From IMG/VR virus record IMGVR_UViG_3300035183_000733, positions 62,001 to 126,000 of that record: 64,000 nucleotides of DNA. The stretch is one strand, 5' to 3'. The notes beneath the pieces are model-generated. The model worked only from the letters and a program-made list of their open reading frames with translations, searched no databases and had not been told where the DNA came from. The position numbers and the translations under genes were made by a program. Positions 3,015 through 62,180 of this stretch are shown here, piece after piece; position 1 is the stretch's first letter; each line of letters opens with the position of its first letter.

Positions 3015-4445
3015 TTATTGTGCTTCCCACATATACACCTGCGCTGTTGTCGTTCCAGTTTCAGTCCATGCAATATCGAATGATGTTGATGTGACGTTCT
3101 GAATGACTCCCGAAATATAACTTCCCCCGCCTGTTGCTAAAAGTATTGCAAAGGTGGTTGAAGATAAACCCGCTTGAGTTGCGGTAATTGTTGCTCCGAA
3201 TCGTTGATATACACACCTGTTTCCGCTTGAGTTCCATATACCAATAGATGATGTGGTTGCGGTTGCAGAGCTGTTTGCGGTAAATGTACCATAACCATAA
3301 ATTCTTATGATAGCTGGAACCTTTCCGAGACCATGTGTGATTGTTGTTGTTTGGGTAGCAGCTGGAGAAGTACCAACACCTGCTGTTGATAACGGGGCTC
3401 CAGAGTAACCAGAAACCCCAGATACTCCGCTGAACCCACTTCGACCGCTGAACCCAGATATTCCGGATGAGCCACTCGTACCGGAGAATCCTGAAGTACC
3501 TGCTGCACCGTTTGTTCCCGAGAATCCTGAAGTCCCGCTATAACCAGAAAACCCAGAGACCCCTGAGTAACCCGACATGCCGCTGAATCCAAAGATCCCT
3601 GAGTAACCCGACAGCCCAGAAAAACCAGATGCGCCAGAGTATCCGGAGAACCCGCTTCGGCCGCTGGTACCAGAAACTCCGGAGTATCCGGAGAACCCTG
3701 AGGAACCATTTGTACCGTCAGTACCACTGAATCCAGATACTCCAGAATAACCGGAGAAACCACTAATGCCGGAGAAACCGGACACGCCCGACACGCCCGA
3801 AAAACCTTGGGTCCCGCTGAAACCAGAAGTACCAGAAATACCGATATTTCCCGAATAACCCGACACGCCACTGAATCCGCTCACTCCAGAGACCCCCGAC
3901 ACGCCAGATGATCCACTCGTGCCGCTTATACCAGAATAACCGGATAAGCCGAGTCCTGAATAACCAGAGACCCCGCTAAATCCAGAAGCAGCTTGTGCAT
4001 CCGCCAAATTTTGCGTTGTTATTAACTTTCCAGATGTACCAAGATCTGGTAGCTCTATCAGTACCGTCTGAGTCAAAGATCTTGGGTCGAATGATATTAC
4101 GTCTGGACGCCATACAAGATCCTGCATGAACTCGTATATCTCGGCCCTTGTAAAGTAGTCGAGAATATTCTCAGAGTTCGGCATAACAAAATGCCTTCTG
4201 TACTCGTATTTCATCTCAGCGGAAACGCCAGACCAATTCGGAATAACGTGCGAATTTGCCGAGTCCTTCCAGTCAAAATACTCCATGCGCTTAACTGAAA
4301 AGAACAAGTACAACGTCTCAGGCGAAGTGACGTCCGTGGCGCCATTGGTGGCAAAGTTATAGTTGTCCGGCACTATGTAATAGTTGCTCAACTGTCCGTC
4401 GACCGTAGATTGAATGCCGTTGCTATCTAATACTGCTATCCTCAT
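3015..4445 (-). CDS. Collagen-like (Ser-Gly-X) fibre protein
   Basis: Long [11 protein letters not shown] triplet tract; C-terminal beta domain with ITHGLGKVP motif seen in phage fibre domains. Confidence 0.8.
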   Translation of the reverse strand: MRIAVLDSNGIQSTVDGQLSNYYIVPDNYNFATNGATDVTSPETLYLFFSVKRMEYFDWKDSANSHVIPNWSGVSAEMKYEYRRHFVMPNSENILDYFTRAEIYEFMQDLVWRPDVISFDPRSLTQTVLIELPDLGTSGKLITTQNLADAQAASGFSGVSGYSGLGLSGYSGISGTSGSSGVSGVSGVSGFSGVSGYSGNIGISGTSGFSGTQGFSGVSGVSGFSGISGFSGYSGVSGFSGTDGTNGSSGFSGYSGVSGTSGRSGFSGYSGASGFSGLSGYSGIFGFSGMSGYSGVSGFSGYSGTSGFSGTNGAAGTSGFSGTSGSSGISGFSGRSGFSGVSGVSGYSGAPLSTAGVGTSPAATQTTTITHGLGKVPAIIRIYGYGTFTANSSATATTSSIGIWNSSGNRCVYQRFGATITATQAGLSSTTFAILLATGGGSYISGVIQNVTSTSFDIAWTETGTTTAQVYMWEAQ

Positions 4446-4447
4446 TT

Positions 4448-6541
4448 TTATATCCTTGTCATTGTAAAGTTCATGTACGATATAGTTATGTCCGCGGCGG
4501 ATGTTATATTCTGCACCCACAACTCTACGTAATCGTTAGTTGCAAGAGATACCAAGCAATTGACTCCAGCTGCGTATTGATCAGTAGAAGTCCTGAAGAA
4601 TGAATTTATCTGCGACTTTGTAACTCGCGCGCCGTTCTTGTAAACAAAGAAACTGAACGTCTCGTTGGCGGATGCAGATACAGACGACACGGACACGTTT
4701 ATTAAAAATTCTCTCGTTGCCGCACCAGTATAAGTCAGTCTTCCATTGGAATGCGTCACGTCTGCCGTAAGATCTCCGGCTGTAGTAGTTCCAGCCACTT
4801 TCAATGGAGTGGATGTTGCCGCGATTGCCGTTGCCGTTGCGTTGCCGTTTAAGTACATTTCTCCGTATGTCGATGCTGGCGAATTTCCAGAAAAACCGCT
4901 CGTGCCAGAGTAACCAGAATATCCGCTAACTCCAGAATAGCCAGAAACGCCAGAGAACCCAGATACACCACTAAAACCACTCACTCCAGAGCGGCCAGAA
5001 ACGCCAGAGAACCCAGATACACCACTAAAACCACTCACTCCAGAGTAACCTGAGGTTCCTGAGGTTCCGGAGTAACCCGAAAATCCCGACGTGCCGGAGT
5101 AACCCGAAAATCCCGACGTGCCGGAGTAACCCGAAAATCCCGACGTGCCGGAGTAACCCGATACGCCGGAGAATCCGCTCGTCCCAGAGTAACCAGATAT
5201 GCCGGAGGTTCCTGAGTATCCGCTTGTTCCTGAGTATCCGCTGAATCCGCTTGTTCCTGAGTATCCAGAAACGCCCGAGTATCCGCTCACACCGGAGTAT
5301 CCAGAAACGCCAGAGTATCCGCTCACACCGGAGTATCCAGAAACGCCCGAGAATCCTGATGTACCGCTGTAACCCGAAAATCCGGAAGTGCCGCTGTAAC
5401 CCGAAAATCCGGAAGTGCCGGAGCCCGAAAATCCGGAGGTGCCAGAGTAACCCGAAGTACCAGAAAAACCAGACACGCCTGAGTAGCCCGATAAACCTAT
5501 GCCAGAGTAACCGGAGATTCCAGACTCACCCTGCACGCCCTGCACGCCGTCAAGATTGACGGTCCACGAAGAATAAGTTCCCGAACCCTCCTCTGTTATG
5601 ACGAGGACTACGAGTTCTCCAGTGCCTGAGTTGTACGACTGCACCTCTCCTATGAAAAGATTTGTAGCGTTGTACGCGACGACAACTCCTTGTCCTACGG
5701 AATACGATAATCCCGACTCAACAAAAATTATTTGTATATTAGGAGACCCAACTGGTATTGTGAGCGAATCAGTTGATGATGTTAAATATCTGTCCGCTTT
5801 GCCAGAGAATCCCGAAAGCCCCGAGTAACCCGAGTAACCCGAGTAACCACTTACCCCAGAGTAGCCGGAGACCCCTGATACCCCGCTTGTACCTGAGTAA
5901 CCAGACTCACCAGAAGTGCCAGAAATTCCAGAAATGCCAGAGTATCCACTGAAACCTGATATGCCCGAATAACCAGACTCGCCTGATGTGCCGCTCGTTC
6001 CAGAGTAACCGCTGAATCCCGAGGTTCCGGAGTATCCGGAGACTCCAGAGTAACCCGAATAGCCCGAGACTCCAGAGTAACCCGAGAACCCGCTCACGCC
6101 AGAGGTTCCACTCGTTCCAGAGTAACCGCTAAAACCGCTCACTCCAGAGTGGCCAGAAACGCCAGAGTAACCCGAGAACCCACTAACGCCAGAGTAACCC
6201 GAGAACCCACTAACGCCAGAGTAACCCGAGATGCCAGAAAATCCAGATATTCCCGAGTGACCACTAACGCCAGAAAACCCACTAAAGCCCGACACACCTG
6301 TTACGAAATTGTAGAAATCGTCAGCTGAAGTAACAGAATATCCATTATAGTTGCCGGTCAATTTACCGTCATCTATAGCTGTTATTAGATCGCGTGAATT
6401 CTGTAATTCCGACAGCGAGTACTCCTCCAGCAGATCATGGTCGACGACTGGATGATAAAAAGTACGTTCACCGAGGTCATAAAGAACCACGATGTCCGGA
6501 CTTCCAACTCCTGTTGTCGTTATTTTTAAAAATGGCACCAT
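4448..6541 (-). CDS. Collagen-like (Ser-Gly-X) fibre protein with C1q/BclA-like head
   Basis: Two long SGX tracts separated by a beta domain; C-terminus [29 protein letters not shown] resembles a C1q/TNF jelly roll. Confidence 0.8.
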
Positions 6542-6546
6542 TTATA

Positions 6547-7632
6547 TTACCTTCTCTTTATTACTATTGTTCCCTTCGGTCTGTCTATGGATGCCCCAGT
6601 CATATACAGTTGAAGTAAATCGCCGGCGTTCACATCCACGTTGTATGTATCTGAGTAATTGCTCGTTTGTGCACCAGTTAAATTTATCACAGCTCCGGTA
6701 AGAGTACCGTTGTTCCGCACCTCTATGCTCCACGCGTTGCCGTTAACCGAGTTGCATGATGCGGACATTGCCACTATAGTGCCATTGTAAGGCATTACGA
6801 CCGGCGCCAGGTTCATGGGCACACCGTCCTCGTCCCTTAGGTATTGATTCGTTGTGTTTGCCGAGTTGCGAGATGCGCTAATGGTAAGCAAGCCGTAGCT
6901 CGGATCACCACTGAGGCCTGAGAATCCGCTCACTCCCGAATAACCGGAAACTCCACTGAATCCAGATACTCCCGATCCGCTCACTCCCGAATAACCACTT
7001 ACGCCAGAAAACCCCGAAACTCCACTGAATCCGGATACTCCAGAAAAACCGGACACGCCACTGAATCCAGATACTCCCAAGTATCCGCTGAACCCTGAGG
7101 TTCCTGAGAATCCGATCACTCCTGAGAATCCACTCACTCCTGAGTATCCAGATATGCCAGAAGTTCCGCTAAATCCACTAACCCCGCTTGTACCGGAGTA
7201 GCCGGAGAACCCCGATGTGCCTGAATAACCGGAGAACCCCGATATACCTGTAACTTTTTTCTCGCCAAGAGTGGTGAGTACCATCCATCCAGCACCGTCG
7301 TTGAATACGAGCTGCTCGTCCGGTTTAAGTATCACGCTTATCAATGTTCTGCTCGTACCCGTGTTGTAGAGCTCGACTGTTATCACCCTGTTGACCGTGT
7401 CGTTGTTGAACACGTTCACGTATTTTATGTTCCTGTATATGGATGCAGCAGGAGGTGCCACAGCCGTTACCGGTGTGTTGCCAGTGAGCACACCGTCATT
7501 GCCACCGGGCGTCATAACTGGTGTTGTCGACTCTATGTCATCGTACGCCGTTACAAATATCGGCTCGCTCGTCGTCGCCGCAGCGTCCGAGTATATCCTG
7601 AGAGATTTGTTTATGGTATCTAATCTTATCAT
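6547..7632 (-). CDS. Collagen-like (Ser-Gly-X) fibre protein, paralogue of 9901-10668
   Basis: N-terminus MIRLDTINKSLRIYSDA near-identical to the 9901 ORF; central SGX tract; C-terminal jelly roll with VNAGD. Confidence 0.8.
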   Translation of the reverse strand: MIRLDTINKSLRIYSDAAATTSEPIFVTAYDDIESTTPVMTPGGNDGVLTGNTPVTAVAPPAASIYRNIKYVNVFNNDTVNRVITVELYNTGTSRTLISVILKPDEQLVFNDGAGWMVLTTLGEKKVTGISGFSGYSGTSGFSGYSGTSGVSGFSGTSGISGYSGVSGFSGVIGFSGTSGFSGYLGVSGFSGVSGFSGVSGFSGVSGFSGVSGYSGVSGSGVSGFSGVSGYSGVSGFSGLSGDPSYGLLTISASRNSANTTNQYLRDEDGVPMNLAPVVMPYNGTIVAMSASCNSVNGNAWSIEVRNNGTLTGAVINLTGAQTSNYSDTYNVDVNAGDLLQLYMTGASIDRPKGTIVIKRR

Positions 7633-7778
7633 CAGCCTACCTGTATTGTAACTATTTCGGCCACTTGGGTGAACGTGTACGCAGAGCCGTCGAGGCTTAT
7701 GCCGACAATAGTGCCGGGGGTCGTGTCTGCGACCTCGAGCACAAATTCTGACGGATCAAAAACTATGTCGTTGATCAT
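7632..7778 (-). CDS. Small hypothetical protein (48 aa), not in ORF track
   Basis: MINDIVFDPSEFVLEVADTTPGTIVGISLDGSAYTFTQVAEIVTIQVG; fills the gap; TGATG overlap with the next start. Confidence 0.65.
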   Translation of the reverse strand: MINDIVFDPSEFVLEVADTTPGTIVGISLDGSAYTFTQVAEIVTIQVG

Positions 7779-7784
7779 GTTCTA

Positions 7785-9899
7785 TTACGCCTGCGTAAGC
7801 AGCGCCCTCACTTTAATTGAACCCGGCAGCGACGTAGCGACGTAACGGATGTAGTTGCCCACGACATCTGCCGAAGAGCTCCATGCGTTCCATACGTTGC
7901 CGTCGGTCGAGTACTGCCACGTTCCGAAGGCGGAAGCCGTCACTGTGTCGTCGACTATCGGCACGCCCGATACCGCGTTGTACAGCCTTATCCTCAGGTC
8001 AGGTATTGTGCCGCCCCATAGGGACGATTGCCTGTACCCGAAGGTGTTAGATGTCACGCTTGACTTGGCCACTGACGGCGTGTAATGAGAATCAGTTGTG
8101 TCGTCCTCGTAAACCACCGTAAGTCCCATTATCCTCGCGGGTATGCACGACTCGCCAAGCACTCTAAATTCGAACTTAAACTGTATAGACGTTGACGGCG
8201 ATATTGATGTTAGCGTGCCACTATCGTCAAGTAGAGTCCACGTACCAGAGTTATCAGATATTCCGGCAGTCCTGACGTAAGTCTTGAACGGCTCCGGATT
8301 CTTAACGAGATAATCATTACCCATCTTCTTAATCTCGTTCACGTAAACCCTATACAGCTTGGTGGCGTTCGACGTGTCCATGGCAGGTGTTATTAGGACC
8401 TGGTTAGTGGTTGACGTGTATGTCCAGTGTGCCTCTATCGGTATGGTGTATATCTGATTGGCCGTTGCTGCCGTACTGTGACGTGCCATATACAGTATTC
8501 CCCCCTCCGACCAAATAGAAAAAGTGGAAGCCTGTATTGAAGGGTGTGGTACTATAGTGGAATCCGCCGTAGACTGGTCGAGCTGTCTGTCGTCTGCGAG
8601 GAATATCAACTCGAACTGCGACGATATTGTGTTATATGTGGTGACGTAGCTGCGGGTACTTGTAGCACCAGTTGTCATTATCACGAGTCTGTCTATCAAG
8701 CTCGAGATCTCTACAGAAGACAACGCGGATGTCGCTGCGAATGTTGCAGTCCCGCCCGGCGGGACCTCGACCATTACGTCCGAGGTCCAGGTTGTGCTAC
8801 CGTTGGTTATGTTAGTCAACGCACACCTGTAAACCCTTGTGGTGGTTACAAAATATAAGCTCTCAACCCCACTTCCAGGACCGTGAGATAACGTACCAAT
8901 CCTGCCGTTATTGATCTGCGACATGGTTCCTGTCAGAACTTGGTTACCAGTCTTAATAATGTTAGTAGTAGTATCCTTGCCCGCGGCAAGCGTTAGCGCC
9001 ATTCTTATGTTATACACGAAGCAGATAGATCCTGTCGCATTCAGTACGTATACATACTGAGATGTCCAAGAAGTCCTCTGTCCTATGGCGGATCCTGCAG
9101 CTGTAGTATTAGTGACCACCGCCGCGTCGGCGAGCCAGTACACAGCCCTTATATTATCGACTGTGGTCGCGGCCGGTATCGTGGTACCGGACGTCGTAAA
9201 ATTTTCTATTCTCAATCCCTTTGTGACGAACAGACCACCATTGGTCGCAGTCGCATTAGTCGTAGACGTCACACACATCAAGTCTTGTATTACGTATGCA
9301 GTTCCACCTGGTATAGTTCCCGCAGAGGTCGTTAACGTTATGGAAGTATCGCCGCCGATGGCCGAGATTTCGTACCACGTGGTTATCGCAGTCGGATCGG
9401 TGGACCCGAATCCAATTCGGCATCCTACGCTCATCCTATCAGTTAGCCAGGCAGATCCGCTTCCGGTCACGGCCGTGCCTGATACAGATACTGTACCAGT
9501 TGTATACGACTCGCATATCATCCTGAACCCCCTTATGGTATGCGCGGTCGCGGTTGGATATGTCAGAGTTATGAAACCCCTCCAGTTGAACATTGACGTG
9601 ACCTTGTTGTACTCATACATAATTATCCTTCTCGTTGCAGCGGCAGCGGCGTTATCGGCAAGGAACACGTAATCGGTATTCGTGTCACAGTTTATTACGT
9701 GCGGGAACATCCCCGGTATCGCCGTGGATTGTTCCATTGGTCTTGCCACACCTATTATCGATGGACCTGCAAACTTGTCGGTAGGGTTGGATCCCGTGTA
9801 TTGCCTGATCTGCGTACCAACGTTGGTCTTGGTGGAGTCGTACGACGTTATAGGCGTCGTGGCTCCGGTGAATAAATGTTCTACTGCTTTCTTTGACAT
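7785..9899 (-). CDS. Large Thr/Ser-rich beta-structured virion (fibre/baseplate) protein
   Basis: 704-aa ORF inside the fibre cluster; GTVSVSGTAVTGSG motif; low charge. Confidence 0.65.
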   Translation of the reverse strand: MSKKAVEHLFTGATTPITSYDSTKTNVGTQIRQYTGSNPTDKFAGPSIIGVARPMEQSTAIPGMFPHVINCDTNTDYVFLADNAAAAATRRIIMYEYNKVTSMFNWRGFITLTYPTATAHTIRGFRMICESYTTGTVSVSGTAVTGSGSAWLTDRMSVGCRIGFGSTDPTAITTWYEISAIGGDTSITLTTSAGTIPGGTAYVIQDLMCVTSTTNATATNGGLFVTKGLRIENFTTSGTTIPAATTVDNIRAVYWLADAAVVTNTTAAGSAIGQRTSWTSQYVYVLNATGSICFVYNIRMALTLAAGKDTTTNIIKTGNQVLTGTMSQINNGRIGTLSHGPGSGVESLYFVTTTRVYRCALTNITNGSTTWTSDVMVEVPPGGTATFAATSALSSVEISSLIDRLVIMTTGATSTRSYVTTYNTISSQFELIFLADDRQLDQSTADSTIVPHPSIQASTFSIWSEGGILYMARHSTAATANQIYTIPIEAHWTYTSTTNQVLITPAMDTSNATKLYRVYVNEIKKMGNDYLVKNPEPFKTYVRTAGISDNSGTWTLLDDSGTLTSISPSTSIQFKFEFRVLGESCIPARIMGLTVVYEDDTTDSHYTPSVAKSSVTSNTFGYRQSSLWGGTIPDLRIRLYNAVSGVPIVDDTVTASAFGTWQYSTDGNVWNAWSSSADVVGNYIRYVATSLPGSIKVRALLTQA

Positions 9900-9900
9900 C

Positions 9901-10668
9901 TTAGTCTTTCATTATTTTGAGGTGCACAGTAACTCTCGTTATAGTTGATACTGAGTCGATGTTAAAGGCGAATATGTCGCCGGCATTGACCGTAGTATCC
10001 GTCCACCCCGTTAGGTTCGTGTTCCTGTTCTTTATCTGCGATACGAGGCGAGGCTTATCGCTGCCCGGTATAGAATCGGCGACAGTCGGCGGATAGTTGT
10101 CGTACGTGTCCTTCCACACGTCCACCTGGATGTCGCCTATTTGGTCGGCGAAAACTACCCACGCTACTATGGTACCAGAGAACGGCACGGTCACGTACGC
10201 TTTAGTTCCTATGGTCAGAGGGTTTGCTCCGTTGTCAAGACCGAACCCGATCGAACCGACCTTTATGTTCTGCCCAGATTCCCCGGTAACTCGTATCTCA
10301 CCAAGAGAGTTCATTACCATCCATCCGGCGGCGTCGCTGAACACGAGCTCTTCCCCTATCTCGAGGTAAACCTTCATCAGCGTACGTTGGTCGACTCCAT
10401 TGAGGAGCTCAATAGTTACCGTATGCGGTGCCGTATCGACATTAGCTACACTTATGTACTTTATGTTCCTGTAGAACGGCGACACAGGCGACGAAACTGC
10501 AGTAACAGGCGTTGTACCATTCAACGATCCGTCCTGACTCCCTGGAGTGAACGCCGGATTGACCACGCGTATATCGTCATACGACGTTACGAATACAGGC
10601 TCGCTCGTCGTCGCCGTAGCGTCCGAGTATATCCTAATGCTCTTCGAGGTCGTATCTAAACGGATCAT
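9901..10668 (-). CDS. Virion fibre-associated protein (stalk-less paralogue of 6547-7632)
   Basis: Shares N-domain and C-domain (VPFSGTIVAW...VNAGD) with 6547-7632 but has no SGX tract. Confidence 0.7.
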   Translation of the reverse strand: MIRLDTTSKSIRIYSDATATTSEPVFVTSYDDIRVVNPAFTPGSQDGSLNGTTPVTAVSSPVSPFYRNIKYISVANVDTAPHTVTIELLNGVDQRTLMKVYLEIGEELVFSDAAGWMVMNSLGEIRVTGESGQNIKVGSIGFGLDNGANPLTIGTKAYVTVPFSGTIVAWVVFADQIGDIQVDVWKDTYDNYPPTVADSIPGSDKPRLVSQIKNRNTNLTGWTDTTVNAGDIFAFNIDSVSTITRVTVHLKIMKD

Positions 10669-10683
10669 ATTTTATATATTTTC

Positions 10684-12222
10684 TTATAGTCCGAGGCTGT
10701 TTATTATCATAGCGAGTATACCAGCATCAAATCCGCTGAAACCAGAGGCGCCGGAGAACCCGCTCACGCCGGAGAACCCGCTCACGCCGGAGAACCCTGA
10801 GGCGCCGAAGTATCCGCTGAAACCAGAGGTGCCCGATAAACCGCTCGTCCCACTCTCTCCCGAGAAACCGCTCGTCCCACTCTCTCCCGAGAATCCTGAG
10901 GCTCCGCTGAATCCTGAGACTCCTGAGTAACCGCTCAAACCAGAGGTGCCCGAGAAACCAGAGGCGCCCGAGAAACCGCTCACCCCGCTGAAACCCGAAA
11001 ATCCAGAGGCTCCAACGAAAGACACCGGCGAGTGAACGTGTGTAGCGTTTGTAAACCCTTCAACGTATAGACTCACCGTTATATTAGACACAGAAGTGGT
11101 CTTAGCATAATACTTGACGAGTATCCTATCCGTGAGGTCGAGGTCGAACTCGCCCTGTAATATCTCTTTAGAATAGAGTGCTACGACCGCGCCGTTTATC
11201 TCGGCAGTCTCAGCACTGAATAAAGGTGTCTCCGTTCCGACGAAATCCCTCTTGTACACGCGTATAACTATTCGCGTGTCTCCAACTGGGTTGTCGACCG
11301 AAGAGTAAGTATCGAATATCCACGAACCACCAGATATGTAAAGCTGGTCTGGGTTAGACGGTAAGGTCAAGAATTGCTGGATAAGAACCTCGCCTGTCGT
11401 ATTATTACACACCGCGGTGAATGAACTCTCTGGATCTATAGAATCGGGATTGATATTCAATTGCCTGAAACCAACTATATCAGAGGCATCGTTCCTCAGG
11501 TAGTATAATGCACCACCGGCTACACCATTGACGCCGGAAAATCCGGAAGCGCCGTCAACACCAGAAAATCCAGAAAATCCAGAGACTCCGGACATACCAT
11601 CCTGTCCATAGTAACCTGATGAACCTGATATTCCGCTGAACCCGGACGTCCCGCTCGCTCCGCTCACACCCGATATGCCACTTGCGCCGGACTCACCAGA
11701 GAAACCCGACGTACCGGAGAATCCTGATACTCCGCTGAATCCGCTCACACCACTGAACCCTGATACGCCCGATGATCCACTCGTGCCGCTTAGACCAGAT
11801 GTGCCGGAAAACCCACTCGTTCCGGAAGTACCGCTGAATCCAGACGTGCCGGAGAATCCTGATACTCCGCTGAATCCGCTCACACCGCTGAACCCTGATA
11901 CGCCCGAGAAACCACTCACGCCCGAAGTACCACTCAATCCGGACGTTCCGGAAATACCGGAAGTGCCGGAGAACCCGGAGGTTCCACTGAATCCTGAAGT
12001 TCCACTCGCGCCGACAAAACTGCCGCTATCGAGCCACTTGACCCCGTCGCCAGTGGTCATAAGTATTTGGCCGGATATACCGGACGAGCCGTCGCCGTCG
12101 ACGAGCGTCGAATTAAGCGCCAGAGGTCCGGACATTGCATCACCCGCCTTGTTCAACTTTGAATCAAGATCGGCCTGCAGTCCATCTATCTGTCGAATGG
12201 GTATTTGACTTTTTGGTGTCAT
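10684..12222 (-). CDS. Collagen-like (Ser-Gly-X) fibre protein
   Basis: [21 protein letters not shown] tail-fibre motif; two SGX tracts flanking a globular domain. Confidence 0.8.
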
Positions 12223-13036: not shown

Positions 13037-13060
13037 AAAGCCGGCTAAAAACCGGCTTTT
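13036..13060. terminator. Bidirectional terminator
   Basis: AAAAGCCGG-CTAAAAA-CCGGCTTTT between convergent genes. Confidence 0.8.
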
Positions 13061-13063
13061 AAA

Positions 13064-14017
13064 TTATTCTTGCTCCAGACCCGCAGGGTTATCCTTGCCG
13101 TATTCGTCCTTCAGTCCCGACCAGTAGTCGTCCCACTTTCTCGTGTAGTAGTCGTCCTTGTCCTTCATGAAGTTGATGAACTCATCGTTCACGTACTTTT
13201 CTTTTTCCTTCTTGAAATCGTCAATGGTGATCTCGAGGTCGTTGTTGTCTATGTACTCCTGTATCTCCTCATCAACCTCATCCGCATCTATATCGTTCTC
13301 GAGAAGCTCATCCTTTATGTAAGCGTCGAAGTTCTCATTGACCATGTCAAACACATTGGTGTAGAACTCTACGAAAGTGGCCGTGGCCGTGAGCTGTGGC
13401 TTGACGTCATCTATCAATTTAGCAACCTGAGAATCAAAGTTCAACTCGAACTCCTCCGCACGCCCGCTGCCGGATGACAGCGTGATCGAGTCGTAGTGAC
13501 CGTTATTGTACCTGGCAGCATCGCTGCCGATGATGAGATCACCCTTCTCGAACTCGCCGCGTATGTAACCGGCGAAGTGCACCTCCCTGTAGTTATTGAA
13601 ACTTATATTGAACGTTACGTTGAGTACGAGCTCCGGTTGCGCTATGAACAGGTCGCCCAGTTTCTTCACGTCTTCTCTCGCCGCTTCTTCTATACCGAGA
13701 TCGTCGAACAGTCCACTGTAGTCCGAGACGGACCCTATAGGTATCTGCCTTATCTTATTCTCGAGCTTGTCCAGCTTGAGGTCGAGTCCGCTCTTGAGCA
13801 TCCAGGTGCCGACTTCGTCCATGCCGTCGTCGTATCCCTCCGCGTCGAACGTGTCCGCCATCTCAATTTTCTTGCTGACCTCTGTGAGTCCTGATGCGGA
13901 CAGCTCGAGAATTAGATTGACGTCGACATCCGTCCTGAAGTCGATGCCCGCCCCTCCGCCCTCGTTGAGACGGTAACTCTCGTTTACAAATTCGTTGAAT
14001 CCGAATATCCTTTTCAT
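13064..14017 (-). CDS. Acidic hypothetical protein with capsid-targeting-like leader
   Basis: Likely start MKRIFGFNEFVNESYRLNEG after an A-rich leader. Confidence 0.75.
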   Translation of the reverse strand: MKRIFGFNEFVNESYRLNEGGGAGIDFRTDVDVNLILELSASGLTEVSKKIEMADTFDAEGYDDGMDEVGTWMLKSGLDLKLDKLENKIRQIPIGSVSDYSGLFDDLGIEEAAREDVKKLGDLFIAQPELVLNVTFNISFNNYREVHFAGYIRGEFEKGDLIIGSDAARYNNGHYDSITLSSGSGRAEEFELNFDSQVAKLIDDVKPQLTATATFVEFYTNVFDMVNENFDAYIKDELLENDIDADEVDEEIQEYIDNNDLEITIDDFKKEKEKYVNDEFINFMKDKDDYYTRKWDDYWSGLKDEYGKDNPAGLEQE

Positions 14018-27157: not shown

Positions 27158-27470
27158 GATAAAATTCGAGTACGTTTTTGATTGTGTCCATCAGTATATT
27201 GTTGTCGACCGACATCCCGGAATGTACCGCCTTACCATCGAAGAACAACGGCGACCTGTTACCGGAGGACATGCAGTAAAAATATGATTTTCTTTCGGAA
27301 TTAGAAACTACGAGGTGGATCCTCTCGTCCAACCACTCACAATTGAATGTCGGGTAAATGACGTAATGATCCTTACCTGGCAAGTCGTTGCCAGGCGGGA
27401 CGCGCCATAACTTATACGCAAGACCTTCAGATACAAGGTCCATGACGTTTTCAATGTGTATATCAACCAT
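27138..27470 (-). CDS. Hypothetical protein
   Basis: 110-aa ORF in the operon. Confidence 0.6.
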   Translation of the reverse strand: MVDIHIENVMDLVSEGLAYKLWRVPPGNDLPGKDHYVIYPTFNCEWLDERIHLVVSNSERKSYFYCMSSGNRSPLFFDGKAVHSGMSVDNNILMDTIKNVLEFYHVKQTV

Positions 27471-27500
27471 GGTAATTTTAGGTCAATATACGAAAAAGTT

Positions 27501-27887
27501 TCAGATTAAAATCCGCATGTGGCGCTTGAAGAAGCGTTTCCACTCTATAAAAGTTTCCTTGTGGTTCATCGTGCCACCAACGTATAGGTACTGATATTGG
27601 TGAACCATCTCGTGCGCAAGTGTGGATATGAAGAGCTCCCGGTTGTCGATTGTCTCGTTGATGCTTATCACTATCTCGTTACCATTGTCGCCCTCACAGA
27701 GACCCCATGCGCCGCGTAAACGGCGGATCTTGAATACCGGCATTGGGAGCTTGTTCCTGAATGCGGCCCTGTTGATCACCCCAAACCAGTACACGATGTG
27801 ACGATCGGTGAACTGGAAGTCATTCCCGTTCTTGTATCGCGTCACGTGCGACTTAACCTTCTTCTTCGCTGCCGATGAGCTAAGCAT
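27501..27887 (-). CDS. SprT-like zinc metalloprotease
   Basis: TLAHEMVHQYQ, downstream H...F..W. Confidence 0.85.
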   Translation of the reverse strand: MLSSSAAKKKVKSHVTRYKNGNDFQFTDRHIVYWFGVINRAAFRNKLPMPVFKIRRLRGAWGLCEGDNGNEIVISINETIDNRELFISTLAHEMVHQYQYLYVGGTMNHKETFIEWKRFFKRHMRILI

Positions 27888-27950
27888 AGTTCCTTGAGAT
27901 GGTTAGTTTTGCTGGGTTTGGGTCTTTATCCCATATCTTATATATCAAAT

Positions 27951-27975
27951 AAAAAACCGGCCCTAAGCCGGTTTT
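27951..27975 (-). terminator. Intrinsic terminator
   Basis: AAAACCGGC-CCTAA-GCCGGTTTT. Confidence 0.75.
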
Positions 27976-28020
27976 CCATATTTTTACAAATTTTATTTAC
28001 TTAGTAACTTTAAGCCTTCT

Positions 28021-28344
28021 TTAATCCAGAAAACCATTTTTCAACCATCGGTGTAGCCATTTTCCGAGTCCGGGTATTTCGGATCCTGGGAAATTTTTCT
28101 CGCCGCTGTGCAACGAATACCTGGACCGGACGAGTACTGCGCACTGATGCTGCCGCAAAAGAGGTAAAACGTTTTTTTCGCAGCGCCAAAGAAAGAAATC
28201 TGCGCCACGGTTTTTGTCATCGTCTAAATGGACAATTCTTACCCACCCTATCCGTCCATTATCATAAACTTTCTGCTCTGCTTGTTCTTGATTTTCTGCT
28301 CCACATATACCATATTCGTGTATTAACCGTAGTGCCTTTTGCAA
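28021..28344 (-). other. Doubtful ORF or gene remnant downstream of the repeat array
   Basis: TTG-start ORF with atypical codon usage; an alternative frame contains DPKYPDS, similar to the upstream gene's NVNYPGS. Confidence 0.3.
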
Positions 28345-28345
28345 T

Positions 28346-28502
28346 TACACTTATCAATTCATTTTGAAGTGCTTTTCCAGCGGCTCGTGCGGCTCAGGAG
28401 TAGCATCGTCGCTGCGACACCCTTCATTTTGAAGTGCTTTTCCTGGTTGTAGTTTATATGAAAAAGGCTGCGACACCCTTCATTTTGAAGTGCTTTCCGA
28501 GC
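28346..28502 (-). CRISPR. CRISPR-like mini-array: 3 x 36-nt repeats, 2 spacers, no cas gene in window
   Basis: Repeats at 28467-28502, 28411-28446 and degenerate 28346-28381; + strand consensus GCTGCGACACCCTTCATTTTGAAGTGCTTTTCCAGC; spacers of 20 and 29 nt. Confidence 0.55.
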
Positions 28503-28693
28503 GCACTTTTTATAAAGTCTTGAATCTGAACATAGTTCATATTAAATTCATCTTCAAAAATCTTCCAAAATAGATGGTAGTTTAAAAACACTCTATCATT
28601 TTCAATTTCAAACATAAATTTGTCGTCTCGGAAATATAATATGCTGCCAGGATAATTCACATTGTCTATCTTAACATCTCTGATAAAGTTCAT
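28454..28693 (-). CDS. Small hypothetical protein whose 3' end is repeat 1 of the array
   Basis: MNFIRDVKIDNVNYPGSILYF...WKIFEDEFNMNYVQIQDFIKSALGKHFKMKGVAAFFI; AT-rich; the ORF track extends it to 28825. Confidence 0.7.
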   Translation of the reverse strand: MNFIRDVKIDNVNYPGSILYFRDDKFMFEIENDRVFLNYHLFWKIFEDEFNMNYVQIQDFIKSALGKHFKMKGVAAFFI

Positions 28694-28779
28694 TTCCTCC
28701 GAAGAAAAAACAGGTAACAATGGTTTTGCGTCAGGCTGTGGTTCGGCAGTATCATCTGGTACAGATGCTTCGCACGGTC

Positions 28780-29502
28780 CTAGTCGTTCTTTGCGAAATT
28801 GGGCACCATCTGTTCGTGGAACCACTGGTCGTCCTTGTCCTCCATGGCGCTAATTATGCAGCGCTGCGTGCCGTGGTAGAACACCTTGATGCTGCGGCCG
28901 TTCAACTTCATCTCGCGGATGCTGTTACCGCATCCCACGTCCTTTATCACCCGTGCGTTGCGCACGGTCTTCTGCAGGTGACCGAACTGCTCCTTGGTTA
29001 TGCTTAGCCCGTATCTCTCTTGCAATCTCTTTGACACCTTTTCGAAATATCTGTCGTATTTGCTCGGTGCGGGTCCACCATGCTTAGCTTGGAACTCGTG
29101 CATAGGCATGTCCTTCTTCTTGACGTTGCATATCTCGCACATAGGCTGTAAGTTCTCTATCTCGTCGCTGCCGCCCTTAGACCGAGCATGTATGTGGTCC
29201 TTTGTCATAAGTATCTCGGTCCCGTACTCATTTACGCCGTAGAGATTGAGGTGCCACTCGTTGAATATGGAGTTGCCCTTGCCCATCCTCTCTATGCGGA
29301 AGAATGCGCCCTTGAGTTCGCAATGGACGCAGTCGCATCCCTTGGCCGCGTACAGCCTCACATTAAGCATACCGATGTTAACCTCCGCGCCGTCGAACCA
29401 GGCGGACGTGAATTTTGGGGTGTCTGGCGTTACCTTGGACAGAACCTCATTGAGTGGAATTTTCCTTCCGTTGTAATTCTCTTTAATTCTCATATATTTC
29501 AT
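28780..29502 (-). CDS. HNH endonuclease domain protein
   Basis: CVHC...TKDHIHARSKGGSDEIENLQPMCEICNVKK. Confidence 0.88.
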   Translation of the reverse strand: MKYMRIKENYNGRKIPLNEVLSKVTPDTPKFTSAWFDGAEVNIGMLNVRLYAAKGCDCVHCELKGAFFRIERMGKGNSIFNEWHLNLYGVNEYGTEILMTKDHIHARSKGGSDEIENLQPMCEICNVKKKDMPMHEFQAKHGGPAPSKYDRYFEKVSKRLQERYGLSITKEQFGHLQKTVRNARVIKDVGCGNSIREMKLNGRSIKVFYHGTQRCIISAMEDKDDQWFHEQMVPNFAKND

Positions 29503-29504
29503 AA

Positions 29505-29593
29505 ATACGGGCAGTCGCCTCGTAGCGCACTCGCGCCGATGGGGCTACTATGTAAGCGGCGAACCTGTTTAATCGGTTCTCGATTCTGCCGTA
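29505..29593 (-). ncRNA. Candidate structured 5'-leader RNA
   Basis: Nested stems GGCAG/CUGCC, GAACC/GGUUC, CGCC/GGCG, GUAGC/GCUAC between a TAAATTCG box (29602-29609) and the HNH start. Confidence 0.4.
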
Positions 29594-29649
29594 AAACTTT
29601 ACGAATTTAGATATTATTTTTGACATAATTTTTTGTTTTTGGAATTTTG

Positions 29650-29952
29650 TTATTTCTTTTTACGATTAGCAGTGTCGTTCTTGTCGTAGTAGTCGGGCTC
29701 CTTCTTCTGGACCCACGCTATGAACTTCTGCATGTCCGGGTGCGCAATGACCTTGTTGGGGTCGTTGAACTCTTTCTCGAGCTCCTTCTCAGTCCACAGC
29801 GAGTGAATCTTGCGGTGACATATCTTGTGTAGGTACTCGGAGTCCTTCCCACCGCGGCACTTCGGTGTAAAGTGGTGCTTATCGATGGATGGACCTTTCC
29901 ACATATCCCGCTCGCAAATCGGGCACTGTCCTATTACTACTGGATCGCTCAT
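29650..29952 (-). CDS. Small HNH-family protein
   Basis: CPIC, HHFTPK, LHKICHRKIH. Confidence 0.8.
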   Translation of the reverse strand: MSDPVVIGQCPICERDMWKGPSIDKHHFTPKCRGGKDSEYLHKICHRKIHSLWTEKELEKEFNDPNKVIAHPDMQKFIAWVQKKEPDYYDKNDTANRKKK

Positions 29953-59252: not shown

Positions 59253-61667
59253 TTAATTTGCTGCAGTGTGTTCCTGCGTGCTGTTGTTCTTGATGAAGTC
59301 GCGAATCTTAGACTCGAGCGGCGTGCCCTTGATTGTCTCCATAAGGCCGTCAAAGCTTCCCTTAGCGAACATATCGCCGAGGCCGCCGTTCTGCACCTTG
59401 AGGTTCTTTGCGAGAGTCTCGGTGAAGCTCACTGTGGATATAGCCATCAGCGCCTCGACCATTTTCGGATCAACGGCTTTAGCCTTCTCGACAGTCTCGT
59501 TAACGCGAATATCAGACTCTGCCTTGCTAACGAAAAGCTCCTGGTCGGCCTCAGCCTTCTCACGAGCGAGCTTGCGCTTGGCTATCTCGTCGAGACCATC
59601 CTGACGGTTCTTCTCATCGTTGAGCTTAGCGAGCTCGTTCTTGGCCATCTCCTGGATCTCCTTGAGCTGGATCTCATACTTGAGCATGTTGGTCTTGTTC
59701 TTCTCCTCGATCTGCTTCCTCATTATCTCCTCGGTCTTCGTGGTGTATTCAAGTTCCTGCTGCTTGCTCTGCATATCGAGGTTGTGCTTGACGGTGTTCT
59801 GCTGTGCTCTCCTGAGCATCTCAGCGATACCGGAATCTCCAATCTCTATGTTGAGAACCTCGACGTCGTACACGACCATGCCGTTCTCTTCAAATGTGCG
59901 ACCTGGGCGCTTGCTGTCTTCGTTCTTGCCGAGGATGAGGTCGCGGATTATGTCGGTAGCCGAAAGGTTGAACTCCTCGATCGTCGTTTTCTTGACAGCG
60001 TTGCGCACGACCGAACGTAGGTGCTGTGTGAGCAATTTGACGTAGTTCGATACGCTGAACCACTTCTTGTTGTCCCCGTCGAAATTAACTCTGTAAGAAA
60101 GGCGGATGCTAACGTTGACCGCGTCCTTGGTCTCCGCGTTAATTACGTCGGATACTATGTTGTTGTCGGTCTGTAAGTATACCGTGCGGAACAGGGTGTT
60201 GTCGGTTTTAGGCTTGCCGGTCGAGAGCGCAAGAACTTCGAGTGTCTCATCGAAATCAAGCAATGCAACCTTAGGTCCTTCCACAACCGAGCGCTCGCCG
60301 GTCTTCTTCACTATCTGGACCGCGTAGCCCGGCCACACGTTGATGCAAATAGCCCCCTCGTATTTTGTATCGAGCGTGATAGTACGGGGCTTGGTGAACT
60401 TCTCGCTGCGTTGTAATTCGTCTGCCACGGCAGAGAAACGCACGGTGCTCTTGGCGCGCAAGTCTGCGGTGCCATATTCGGCGAATAAGCCTGTCGGACC
60501 TTCCGAGCCGCTGATGCCCTGCGCTGCCTTCATGCGGGAATTGTAATCCTTCGCCTCGTGATTGCCCGGGAACCAAAGGTCAACCGTTCTGTCGTCGAGA
60601 ACCCTCTTCACAATAACTTCCTTGCGTGGATCCGGCAACAACATGCTCGGCCCCTTGACGGTCTTAACCTCGCCGGTGCTCTTGTCGAGCATGTACCTTG
60701 CCTCACCGGCAGGAACGGCCACCGCGTAGTGCACGACTTGGTCTCCGTATTTAATGATAGCGTGTTCCGGGCGCGGGAAGTAAATCTTCTGCTGCTTGCC
60801 TGTTATGAATAACTCGTCACCGGACTTGTAGTCTTCGTAGTCTGCGATCACCTTTACATAGATGCCCATGTTATCGTTCAGCTCGATGGCTTTGAACTTG
60901 GTGTTGCCGTTCTGCTCCACAAACGTCTCTGTCGGTTTAGGGAACACAACGGAAGGCCCTTCAACGAACCGCTTGTCGCCGTTCTGATCGAGTAGTATGC
61001 AGTACTCAAGACGCTCGAGAGTGACGGCTTTCCTCACGTACTTGCCGCTGTCGTTATCCTTAAGCACCTCGATACCGGTCGGTGGTATGTAGAACGACAC
61101 ATCCGTACCTTTAATGATGAAGAGCTTGCCTATCGCAATGTCCTTCTCGTTTATCGTTGTCGTGGAATTCTTCTTCTGTTCCTCCGCCTCATCGTTGGTC
61201 TTGATGATGGCATTCTTCAGATTCTTCTTAGCGGCATCCTCGTTGTATACGCGGACGAGCAGATACTCGTTGCTCTTAAGTTGGTGACCTGGAATTACGT
61301 TACCAATCTGTCCTGGGAACAGGGCCATTGTGTAAGGTCCCGGGATATTGATCTTGTGACCGATGTAGAGGTCCGGCGACTGCTGCTTGCCCTTGATTGG
61401 ATGTTGGATATTATCGCCCTTGTTCGGGTTGGTTAGGACGATGTACTCGCCCTCGTTTGCTGTTGGGAAGGTCTGTATCGCGTCCATCGCTGTGGATGCC
61501 CTGTGATACCTTCTTTGATTCGGGTCATAAGTTACCGGCTTGTCTGTGTCTGCGAGACTTATCTTGTTTGGTCCCACTATCACATCGACCTGACCGCTTG
61601 CGCCGTCCTGCACGTACACGAATGTGCCCTGTGCCAGAATGATGTCGCCTGTTCTTTCGTTACTCAT
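59253..61667 (-). CDS. Major vault protein (MVP) homologue
   Basis: Repeated vault-type units (V.D..SG.V.VIVGP; LLDQNG.KRFVEGP; LDKSTGEVKTVKGP; KTGERSVVEGP), LSTGKPK, shoulder/SPFH-like domain, long C-terminal coiled coil. Confidence 0.85.
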   Translation of the reverse strand: MSNERTGDIILAQGTFVYVQDGASGQVDVIVGPNKISLADTDKPVTYDPNQRRYHRASTAMDAIQTFPTANEGEYIVLTNPNKGDNIQHPIKGKQQSPDLYIGHKINIPGPYTMALFPGQIGNVIPGHQLKSNEYLLVRVYNEDAAKKNLKNAIIKTNDEAEEQKKNSTTTINEKDIAIGKLFIIKGTDVSFYIPPTGIEVLKDNDSGKYVRKAVTLERLEYCILLDQNGDKRFVEGPSVVFPKPTETFVEQNGNTKFKAIELNDNMGIYVKVIADYEDYKSGDELFITGKQQKIYFPRPEHAIIKYGDQVVHYAVAVPAGEARYMLDKSTGEVKTVKGPSMLLPDPRKEVIVKRVLDDRTVDLWFPGNHEAKDYNSRMKAAQGISGSEGPTGLFAEYGTADLRAKSTVRFSAVADELQRSEKFTKPRTITLDTKYEGAICINVWPGYAVQIVKKTGERSVVEGPKVALLDFDETLEVLALSTGKPKTDNTLFRTVYLQTDNNIVSDVINAETKDAVNVSIRLSYRVNFDGDNKKWFSVSNYVKLLTQHLRSVVRNAVKKTTIEEFNLSATDIIRDLILGKNEDSKRPGRTFEENGMVVYDVEVLNIEIGDSGIAEMLRRAQQNTVKHNLDMQSKQQELEYTTKTEEIMRKQIEEKNKTNMLKYEIQLKEIQEMAKNELAKLNDEKNRQDGLDEIAKRKLAREKAEADQELFVSKAESDIRVNETVEKAKAVDPKMVEALMAISTVSFTETLAKNLKVQNGGLGDMFAKGSFDGLMETIKGTPLESKIRDFIKNNSTQEHTAAN

Positions 61668-61736: not shown

Positions 61737-62180
61737 TCATGCGAGATGCCTTTCGTCTTTGTACACCGGTTTCGGTTTGTTATTGTGAGTCCACAGACGT
61801 GCGAATGGCGTATCGAAATAATCGTTATACCTCATGGTGTCGTCTATGTGGAAATCGATACCGTGTTCCTTACAGTAGTCCCCCTTCGCCCTGTCCCACA
61901 GGATGTTGTCCTGATCCTTGTCGCCAGTGTTGATCCACGGGTGGTCGGGGTTAGGGTCGTATCGCATTGGAGTACCCGAGTTGATGTGGTGATCTGTGAT
62001 GCTGAACTGGTGAGTCCACTTTATGCCGAGATCTCTGAGCTGCTTCTCGATGTCTTCGTTCCACTTAGAACCGGTCATAATGTGCACCTCGTGCCCGTTA
62101 TCAACGAGCAATGTCGTTAGCACCGAAAAAACTTTGGGCAGCGCATCTATCACGCCATGAATGTCGAATCCGAACTTCAT
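61737..62180 (-). CDS. HAD-superfamily hydrolase-like protein
   Basis: FGFDIHGVI, IMTG, K...C, HIDD. Confidence 0.7.
   Translation of the reverse strand: MKFGFDIHGVIDALPKVFSVLTTLLVDNGHEVHIMTGSKWNEDIEKQLRDLGIKWTHQFSITDHHINSGTPMRYDPNPDHPWINTGDKDQDNILWDRAKGDYCKEHGIDFHIDDTMRYNDYFDTPFARLWTHNNKPKPVYKDERHLA

Follow-up and report, generated by a model that had tools for sequence, protein, structure and literature searches.

The stretch of DNA considered here, positions 62,001 to 126,000 of the viral record IMGVR_UViG_3300035183_000733 (a contig of 373,759 bp in IMG/VR), carries on its minus strand a small gene whose 3' end recurs twice immediately downstream. This whole stretch of 64,000 nucleotides (nt) is called the window below. 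We think it rather likely that the repeated element is a short, degenerate array of the type known as CRISPR (short palindromic repeats that are clustered and regularly interspaced), belonging to a widespread phage module in which the small gene serves as the leader and its last 36 nt as the first repeat. An earlier note on this DNA had interpreted the feature as a CRISPR-like array with a small protein, and the interpretation is now supported by the arrays found at relatives of the gene, by the polarised turnover of their spacers, and by spacers that match protospacers in other phage contigs. Two further points, the apparent translation of the array as a C-terminal tail and the position of a probably degenerate copy on a strain-specific island, are absent from that note.

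A repeat search locates the 36-nt unit three times in the 64 kb, at 28346-28381, 28411-28446 and 28467-28502, where the earlier note had placed it. A 20-mer of the unit, with up to 3 mismatches allowed, has exactly 3 sites in the window against 0.01 expected by chance, and 0 of 100 shuffles gave 3. Thirty bases are identical between the two gene-proximal copies. The repeats are not an assembly artefact, because the depth is flat and a Logan assembly made independently from another run agrees at 100% identity across 15.2 kb. The parts of the feature are as follows.

28454..28693, minus strand: small gene, 79 amino acids from an ATG at 28693 (a GTG at 28825 would give 123)
28467..28502, minus strand: repeat 1, embedded in the gene, encoding LGKHFKMKGVAA and corresponding to the leader-proximal repeat
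28447..28466, minus strand: spacer 1, 20 nt, abnormally short against the family mode of 30 nt
28411..28446, minus strand: repeat 2, which would read QEKHFKMKGVAA in the -1 frame relative to the gene
28382..28410, minus strand: spacer 2, 29 nt, 62% GC
28346..28381, minus strand: terminal repeat, with the first ~24 nt (the gene-proximal part) kept and the last 12 degenerate

Translation of the minus strand from 28502 to 28467 gives ...ALGKHFKMKGVAA, followed by FFI and a stop that closes the open reading frame (ORF) 28454-28693; repeat 1 is indeed the C-terminus of this gene, as had been claimed. Spacer 1 contains the final 3 sense codons of the gene (FFI) together with its stop, TAA (28454-28456). 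The terminal repeat, in the third frame, reads LEKHFKMN and then meets a stop. The 5' ends of the three copies have diverged and the unit spacings, 56 and 65 nt, are irregular. The unequal spacers of 20 and 29 nt and the degeneracy of the distal copy, both described before, were recovered in the coordinates and the alignment. In the last unit a 29-nt spacer is joined to a half-degenerate repeat, a shape that is common at the ends of arrays in the family, as is a last spacer of 29 nt before the terminal repeat. An exact 18-mer of the window repeat occurs in IMG/VR in its own contig and otherwise in chance matches only, the region has no megablast match among 50,697 cultured phage records, and a search of Rfam at E<=10 returned no CRISPR-DR or other credible family.

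Anatomy and turnover of the arrays

Loci of the same kind were sought with a back-translated pattern of two E-x-H-F-K copies placed 66 nt apart, which yielded 7 stretches in IMG/VR, 2 in 185,579 species genomes and 96 in metagenomes. Both of the species-genome stretches lie outside the family, one being a true CRISPR array in a metagenome-assembled genome (MAG) of Elusimicrobiota and the other a protein repeat of 33 nt. Within the pattern loci, a profile derived from the aligned proteins detected 120 family genes, and after dereplication 65 distinct arrays, all on metagenomic phage contigs, begin within the last 36 nt of the gene. The suggestion that homologues of the small protein would be followed by arrays with locus-specific repeats and variable spacers thus held good at 65 distinct loci. 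Such arrays recur in dozens of divergent phages, with several in one genome, and every family-type array for which upstream sequence is available is attached to the gene; 41 of the 120 family genes have no second copy of the repeat.

The unit is sharply bounded. In the 26 arrays with at least 4 copies, a block of exactly 36 columns has column identities of 0.91-1.00, and the columns on either side of it stand near 0.5. The block begins at the third base of a codon and finishes at the second base of a Pro codon, so that its edges ignore codon boundaries. Of 175 spacers, 135 are 30 nt long, 28 have 29 nt and 5 have 31; they form 159 clusters, and about 21% have lengths that are not multiples of 3. 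One full unit of repeat and spacer comes to 66 nt, or 22 codons. The possibility, raised earlier as one that would overturn the interpretation, that the spacers are duplicated 3' ends of genes is not what was found, the spacers being unrelated to each other and mostly 30 nt in length. The terminal copy agrees with the array consensus at 91% of positions in its first 18 nt and at 59% in its last 12.

The arrays grow next to the gene, each addition consisting of a 30-nt, apparently foreign fragment and a fresh copy of the gene-embedded 36-nt repeat. Related arrays have their gene-distal (trailer) spacers in common and differ in the gene-proximal ones. In the pair L107 and L063 the downstream flank and the last three spacers are identical, including single-base variants in the old repeats; the gene-proximal parts hold private spacers, 7 in L107 and 2 in L063, and beside these the repeats show the variant of the gene-embedded repeat that is peculiar to the lineage. 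Between L056 and L087 both flanks are the same and the sole difference is the gene-proximal spacer, and the distal spacers of L104 and L058 are common to both. As to where the fragments come from, five family spacers match sequence outside the arrays on other phage contigs that carry family genes, three of them at 30/30 nt, one at 29/30 and one at 28-29/30. The contigs with these protospacers belong to kin phages of the same samples, and the matched sites include an aspartyl-protease-like ORF, an intein-bearing ORF and an 804-amino-acid ORF. The spacers of an 11-repeat array had no protospacer in cultured phages.

Some further observations concern the ends and contents of individual arrays. 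At L019:5980-6060 an ATG within the terminal degenerate repeat (...TTCAAAATGAAT...) opens the next gene, which encodes a protein with a transmembrane segment, and the window terminal repeat has the same ATG, with a single codon between it and a stop; the terminal repeat seems to serve at the same time as the region where the downstream gene starts. The same spacer stands twice in a row in some arrays (L058, on the reverse complement at 13055-13220, and L112, L087 and L086), and consecutive spacer duplications occur in ordinary CRISPR arrays too. The pattern also caught two ordinary CRISPR arrays, L021:62-430 in the Elusimicrobiota MAG (36-nt repeats, 30-nt spacers) and L044:1529-2084 on a metagenome contig (28-30-nt spacers), neither of them preceded by a family gene. 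Finally, seven loci (L022, L024, L037, L054, L076, L105 and L111) hold long coding repeats of 33 nt, or 11 residues, of the form E-E-N-H-F-K-A-Q-G-N-K. These occur in Planctomycetota-type and metagenome contigs, are unrelated to the family, and matched the pattern because two of their periods make 66 nt.

Coding constraint and the protein family

The first repeat is under selection at the nucleotide level on top of its role in coding for VEEHFKxKGVTP. When codon use in the gene body and in the first repeat was compared over 57 non-redundant genes, the ratio of TTT to TTC for Phe was 421:73 in the bodies and 10:56 in the repeat (p=1e-30), and that of AAA to AAG for Lys was 537:123 in the bodies and 56:40 in the repeat. 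Conservation between loci is likewise higher in the repeat, at 75%, than in the gene body, at 58%.

Beyond the gene, the array appears to be read by ribosomes as a C-terminal tail up to the first stop or frameshift and to evolve neutrally past that point. This is suggested by the depletion of in-frame stops only where the frame is still open: of 86 open-frame spacers 16 are interrupted by an in-frame stop, where the two other frames give 42 and 40 and shuffles give 44.5±4.5, whereas for spacers past the first stop or frameshift the count is 24 of 49, against 24 and 25 in the other frames. Capture of the open spacers in the reading frame of their source was considered as an explanation and rejected, since it did not hold in either of the two cases checked; the depletion therefore points, as far as those two cases go, to selection after insertion. 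The arrays of L090 and L096 stay open over 6-7 units, and those of L107, L063 and L075 continue with perfect repeats after stops and frameshifts.

A word-index protein search with the 79-amino-acid protein matched only the protein itself, and an exhaustive HMMER search found 283 relatives at E<=1e-3. Most are 100-150 amino acids long, with a variable helical N-terminus, a domain of 70 residues, and a conserved C-terminus (...IQxFIKxxVEEHFKxKGVTP). The family has no match in Pfam, PHROGs or PADLOC, and tblastn of a member against the 50,697 cultured phage records gave none either. AlphaFold models the domain as four strands and two helices, with a predicted local distance difference test score (pLDDT) of 84, and leaves the motif mostly disordered; fold searches with this model returned nothing at E<0.09 from PDB and BFVD and only unnamed clusters from the ESM Atlas.

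In many relatives the 12-residue motif occurs 1-3 further times, and the distance from copy to copy is nearly always exactly 22 residues. Among 151 proteins examined, which came from the protein search without selection by any DNA pattern, in-frame tandem pairs of the motif occur in 29, nearly all at exactly 22 residues. Within one protein the motif copies are identical and the 10-residue linkers are unrelated, and 12 plus 10 residues correspond to 36 plus 30 nt. On a 148-kb contig, L119:3001-5283 is a single ORF of 760 amino acids made of five family domains, each with 1-3 diverged repeat units, the whole modules having been tandemly duplicated (with a step of 288 nt) and fused into one reading frame; it looks like a fossilised, fully translated version.

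The window copy and its surroundings

The small gene of the window is about 29% GC in surroundings of about 50%, and its protein lacks the N-terminal helical part of about 45 residues that is present in the family. It lies with its mini-array in the following setting.

28047..28749: strain-specific island of ~700 bp, carrying the gene, the mini-array and most of ORF 28021-28344
28021..28344, minus strand: ORF of 107 amino acids, with a TTG start directly after the terminal repeat and a 3' end that crosses the island border; a doubtful gene
28780..29502, minus strand: HNH endonuclease gene, 240 amino acids (Pfam PF01844, E=1.2e-9; PHROGs HNH families), adjoining the small gene upstream
27953..27975: terminator-like GC-rich hairpin between runs of A and T, in the conserved flank on the downstream side of the module

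The island can be recognised because its flanks are conserved and its middle is different in relatives. In relatives from wastewater and soil, the flanks (27403-28046 and 28750-29600) are mostly 95-99% identical and different sequence replaces the island; runs X3, X4 and X5 cover only the two flanks, with loose ends at each island border. In run X3 the two flanks sit on separate long contigs (70 and 80 kb), and the difference may therefore exceed a simple swap. The 107-residue ORF downstream of the array has no family or homologue, including downstream of other arrays. In the microbial-mat sample from which the window itself comes, a 1,575-nt contig (run X1 record 2) carries a fragment of a family gene that is 87% identical to window positions 28421-28676 and has the same repeat core before passing into different sequence, so at least 2 family members co-occur in that sample. 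The window copy is probably a degenerate, horizontally acquired and decaying instance of the module, as judged from its 5'-truncated gene, its spacers of 20 and 29 nt, the diverged 5' ends of its repeats, and an AT-rich island that is absent from sister strains.

The HNH gene reported immediately upstream was found there, at 28780-29502, and is a mere neighbour, since there is no conserved HNH partner at the 48 other family loci compared. A second ORF, of 100 amino acids (29650-29952, minus strand), has an HNH-like Cys/His motif by eye and no Pfam HNH match, and both HNH-type ORFs sit between the ligase and topoisomerase genes. This gap is seen as a hyperplastic insertion zone because the sole distant relative that was found (L011) has one small gene there.

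The label of a Cas-less array, Cas standing for CRISPR-associated, was also borne out: there is no cas family among ten large neighbours of family loci, no conserved neighbour cluster of any kind in the 48 loci, no cas gene among the eight window ORFs of at least 450 amino acids, and no PADLOC match for the family protein. No cas13b occurs in the family loci examined, nor any anti-repeat or sequence resembling a trans-activating CRISPR RNA (tracr) within 3 kb on either side of 59 arrays. The neighbours of family arrays are typical phage accessory genes, among them S-adenosylmethionine (SAM) lyase, MetK, ThyA, a GmrSD-like protein and TnpB. A TnpB with an IS605 OrfB / Cas12f-like TNB domain lies within a few kb of the arrays on two related contigs, at L058:3979-5211 and at L104:755-2014, and is probably a coincidental insertion sequence (IS) element.

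The window phage is T4-like, with a Gp23-type capsid protein, a prohead protease, a family B polymerase and a split topoisomerase II. Elsewhere in the window, an ORF of 804 amino acids at 59253-61667 (minus strand) matches the shoulder and repeat domains of major vault protein along with SPFH/Band 7 (E=2e-27), which is unusual for a phage genome, and three large ORFs at 3015-12222 (minus strand) with collagen triple-helix repeats (E down to 3e-54) are probably fibre proteins.

Explanations and known systems

The earlier note had likened the repeat to those of type VI-B systems, and the likeness stands in part. Over 48 distinct family repeats, identity to the type VI-B repeat of Flavobacterium columnare averages 20 of 36 positions, with a maximum of 24-25, against 10.9±1.8 for shuffles (z of about 5), and this repeat is the best of the seven compared; verified repeats of types II-C, II-A and VI-D, compared along with two CRISPR repeats from metagenomes, reach 13-17 of 36. 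Aligned in the sense orientation, the end GGTGGAA... falls on GTTGGGAA... and ...ATTACACC on ...CTACAAC. Repeats of 36 nt and spacers of 30 nt in the family add to the moderate likeness; the window's own spacers depart from this format. What the comparison brings out is a resemblance, to be distinguished from compatibility with a known Cas13b. The terminal complementarity and hairpin that had been read into the unit have fared less well. GCTG/CAGC ends and the letters CTTCA-TTT-TGAAG are there, and folding and covariation lend them no support: single units and the whole region fold no better than shuffles (z -1.3 to -2.1), and the proposed stems pair in 84% of cells, no more than with shuffled columns.

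If the feature is a CRISPR-type array, insertion of its spacers would fall to a CRISPR adaptation complex that acts in trans and is most probably provided by the host, much as the F. columnare VI-B arrays borrow the Cas1 of a II-C system. The array would be co-transcribed with the small gene, and its VI-B-like repeat RNAs might engage a Cas13b-like effector of the host, whether to act as decoys or to guide it against competing phages. Selection against stops could serve to keep ribosomes on the array RNA, avoiding transcriptional polarity or preserving coupling to the next gene.

A number of observations weigh against this account. Identity of the family repeats to the sole verified VI-B repeat is only 55-69%, and among 47 distinct family repeats neither the terminal stem nor the central hairpin shows covariation beyond shuffled columns. 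The count of 66-nt units is inflated because the search pattern forces one 66-nt pair per locus, although protein tails gathered without the pattern show the same period of 22 residues. The five protospacers lie on mixed strands with no consistent protospacer adjacent motif (n=5), and what is targeted could be kin of the phages or the genomes of the phages themselves. The window spacers, at 20 and 29 nt, are unlike the near-constant 30 nt of the family; a search of spacers against phage genomes had been proposed, and where it succeeded for five spacers of the family, the 29-nt spacer of the window has no protospacer in the window when up to 3 mismatches are allowed, and no exact one in IMG/VR. 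Neither a host nor an effector was identified for the module. The MetK of L107, a family-bearing contig other than the window, leaves the host ambiguous, leaning to Bacillota over Bacteroidota, and the 185,579 species genomes hold no cellular array with two copies of the family core motif 66 nt apart, so that no matching host repeat is known. As for transcription of the array and its processing into CRISPR RNAs, no RNA run holds the island, and run X5, which is labelled RNA and is without 28047-28749, is probably DNA.

Could the arrays be a by-product without function? On such an account the 3' end of the gene happens to resemble a repeat, a host Cas1-Cas2 complex occasionally integrates fragments there, and the arrays ride along neutrally, the phage tolerating them since every insertion brings in exactly 22 codons. 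The lack of cas or partner genes nearby would fit, as would the 41 of 120 genes without a second copy, the neutrality of out-of-frame spacers, the decayed look of the window copy, and protospacers in same-sample kin contigs, which could be self-derived. Strong constraint on the synonymous sites of the repeat across the 57 non-redundant genes, its greater conservation relative to the gene body, and the presence of arrays in dozens of divergent phages, several per genome, suggest instead that the repeat is maintained for its own sake, and we consider a mere by-product unlikely. A phage system that is autonomous, with the small protein binding, processing or recruiting the repeat RNA in a guide-based inter-phage device that dispenses with host Cas effectors, is distinctly improbable in our judgement. 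It would account for the attachment to the gene of every family-type array with upstream sequence, the family is large, well conserved and predicted with confidence to have a novel fold, and phage guide systems outside CRISPR are known (VIPR). Yet the 70-residue domain has no recognisable nucleic-acid-binding or catalytic motif, spacer insertion needs an integrase and none was found nearby, and many family genes are without arrays; moreover, as the first repeat is part of the gene, the link between gene and array may be one of structure only.

The remaining alternatives do without a guide RNA. A tandem peptide of 22 residues, with a 12-residue motif and hypervariable linkers of 10 (such as a precursor peptide with several cores, or a motif repeated for cleavage or docking), would make the regularity of the DNA a side effect of protein-level selection, and would explain why stops are depleted in the open part, why L090 and L096 stay open over 6-7 units, why the 760-residue ORF reads through five modules, and why the period is a multiple of three. 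We hold it to be very unlikely, because the repeats are identical at synonymous sites with sharp edges off codon boundaries, because perfect repeats follow stops and frameshifts in L107, L063 and L075 and about 21% of spacers are not multiples of 3, because spacers match unrelated phage genes at 28-30 of 30 nt and not in the source frame in the two cases checked, and because the motif is mostly disordered in the model. The idea that the window copies are frameshifted remnants of a pure peptide repeat was dropped after the analysis at the DNA level. Recombination scars, whether the 3' ends of deleted paralogues or duplications left by homing-endonuclease repair beside the HNH gene, are scarcely credible: the adjoining HNH genes, the hyperplastic island and the irregular window spacings (56 and 65 nt) speak for them, but the copies have no similarity outside the 36-nt unit, deletions do not produce a 30-nt spacer size, polarity or foreign protospacers, and HNH is not a conserved neighbour. 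This explanation is already disfavoured.

It is possible, though doubtful, that gene and array form a purpose-built device of a new kind, with an ORF as leader, a first repeat that codes for the C-terminus, ribosome transit by design, and a protein that acts with the repeat RNA; the small protein would then counter Cas13, help to process or load the RNA, or be the effector itself. No "translated CRISPR array" would have preceded such a device, which might offer a view of how arrays and leaders arise from gene ends. Phage Cas-less arrays have so far been treated as non-coding copies of host arrays, and here each added spacer lengthens a protein by 22 residues, and selection acts on the same bases as protein, repeat and reading frame. 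Should the proposed mechanism hold, the module would be an instance from nature in which adaptation machinery writes into the ORF of a phage, and a candidate type VI-directed mimic, of which a published survey of viral mimics had none; it would also supply a new protein family as a candidate for anti-CRISPR or RNA-binding activity and a system for asking whether translation protects array transcription. There is a warning for annotation as well, in that hundreds of "hypothetical proteins" with VEEHFK repeat tails are read-through translations of arrays. Literature term searches returned no description of an array with a coding-gene leader, a first repeat encoding a C-terminus, and translated units, although absence is not provable in this way.

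Among known systems, the type VI-B arrays of Bacteroidota offer a close comparison. CRISPR-2 of F. columnare ATCC 49512 has 9 repeats and 30-bp spacers (PMC5395568), and the F. columnare VI-B array, with 36-bp repeats, acquires spacers in trans through II-C Cas1 and is transcribed from the leader end (PMC8092290). The module shares with these the 36-nt repeats and, in the family, the 30-nt spacers, a variable end on the side where transcription would start, and spacer acquisition without cas1 or cas2 of its own; it differs in residing in phage genomes, with no cas13b nearby and with a repeat that overlaps a coding gene. Arrays without Cas proteins are also carried by huge phages, where they may borrow host Cas and target other phages (Al-Shayeb et al. 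2020, PMC7162821), and virus-borne mini-arrays of interviral conflict have been modelled (PMC7099407). The likeness lies in compactness, in the lack of adaptation and interference genes, in spacers that match phages, and in a presumed reliance on host Cas. The module stands apart in that its leader is a conserved coding gene whose C-terminus is encoded by the first repeat, in that its units of 22 codons appear to be translated and under selection against stops, and in that it is tied to one protein family and without a known host array of the same repeat.

Solitary repeats are a further point of reference. Racrs are solitary, non-coding repeats at least 90% identical to the repeat of the host (Camara-Wilpert et al. 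2023, PMC10651486), and in the accompanying survey repeat units of viruses turned up for all CRISPR types but VI (PMC10651486). With Racrs the module shares the mimicry of a repeat by a mobile element and anti-defence surroundings, as in the SAM lyase beside L107; it differs in having arrays with spacers that turn over inside an ORF, and the scan of 185,579 species genomes for two core-motif copies 66 nt apart gave no cellular array of the family type. VIPR, in which a phage repeat RNA of 5-nt GGY/NN tandem repeats is paired with a RAMP protein, Vipr (bioRxiv 10.64898/2026.04.26.720920), is comparable as a phage-encoded repeat RNA with a protein, and inter-phage conflict is the use to which VIPR is put. 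The module departs from it in its 36-nt repeat and 30-nt spacers, and in having a domain of 70 residues and no RAMP protein. The growth of the arrays, finally, recalls the spontaneous neo-CRISPR arrays that Nivala and colleagues reportedly obtained in 2018 from off-target spacer integration, said to be rare laboratory events at random sites. In both, the target is duplicated as a new repeat around a spacer inserted at a non-canonical site, but the site used by the phage module is conserved and under selection across a large gene family.

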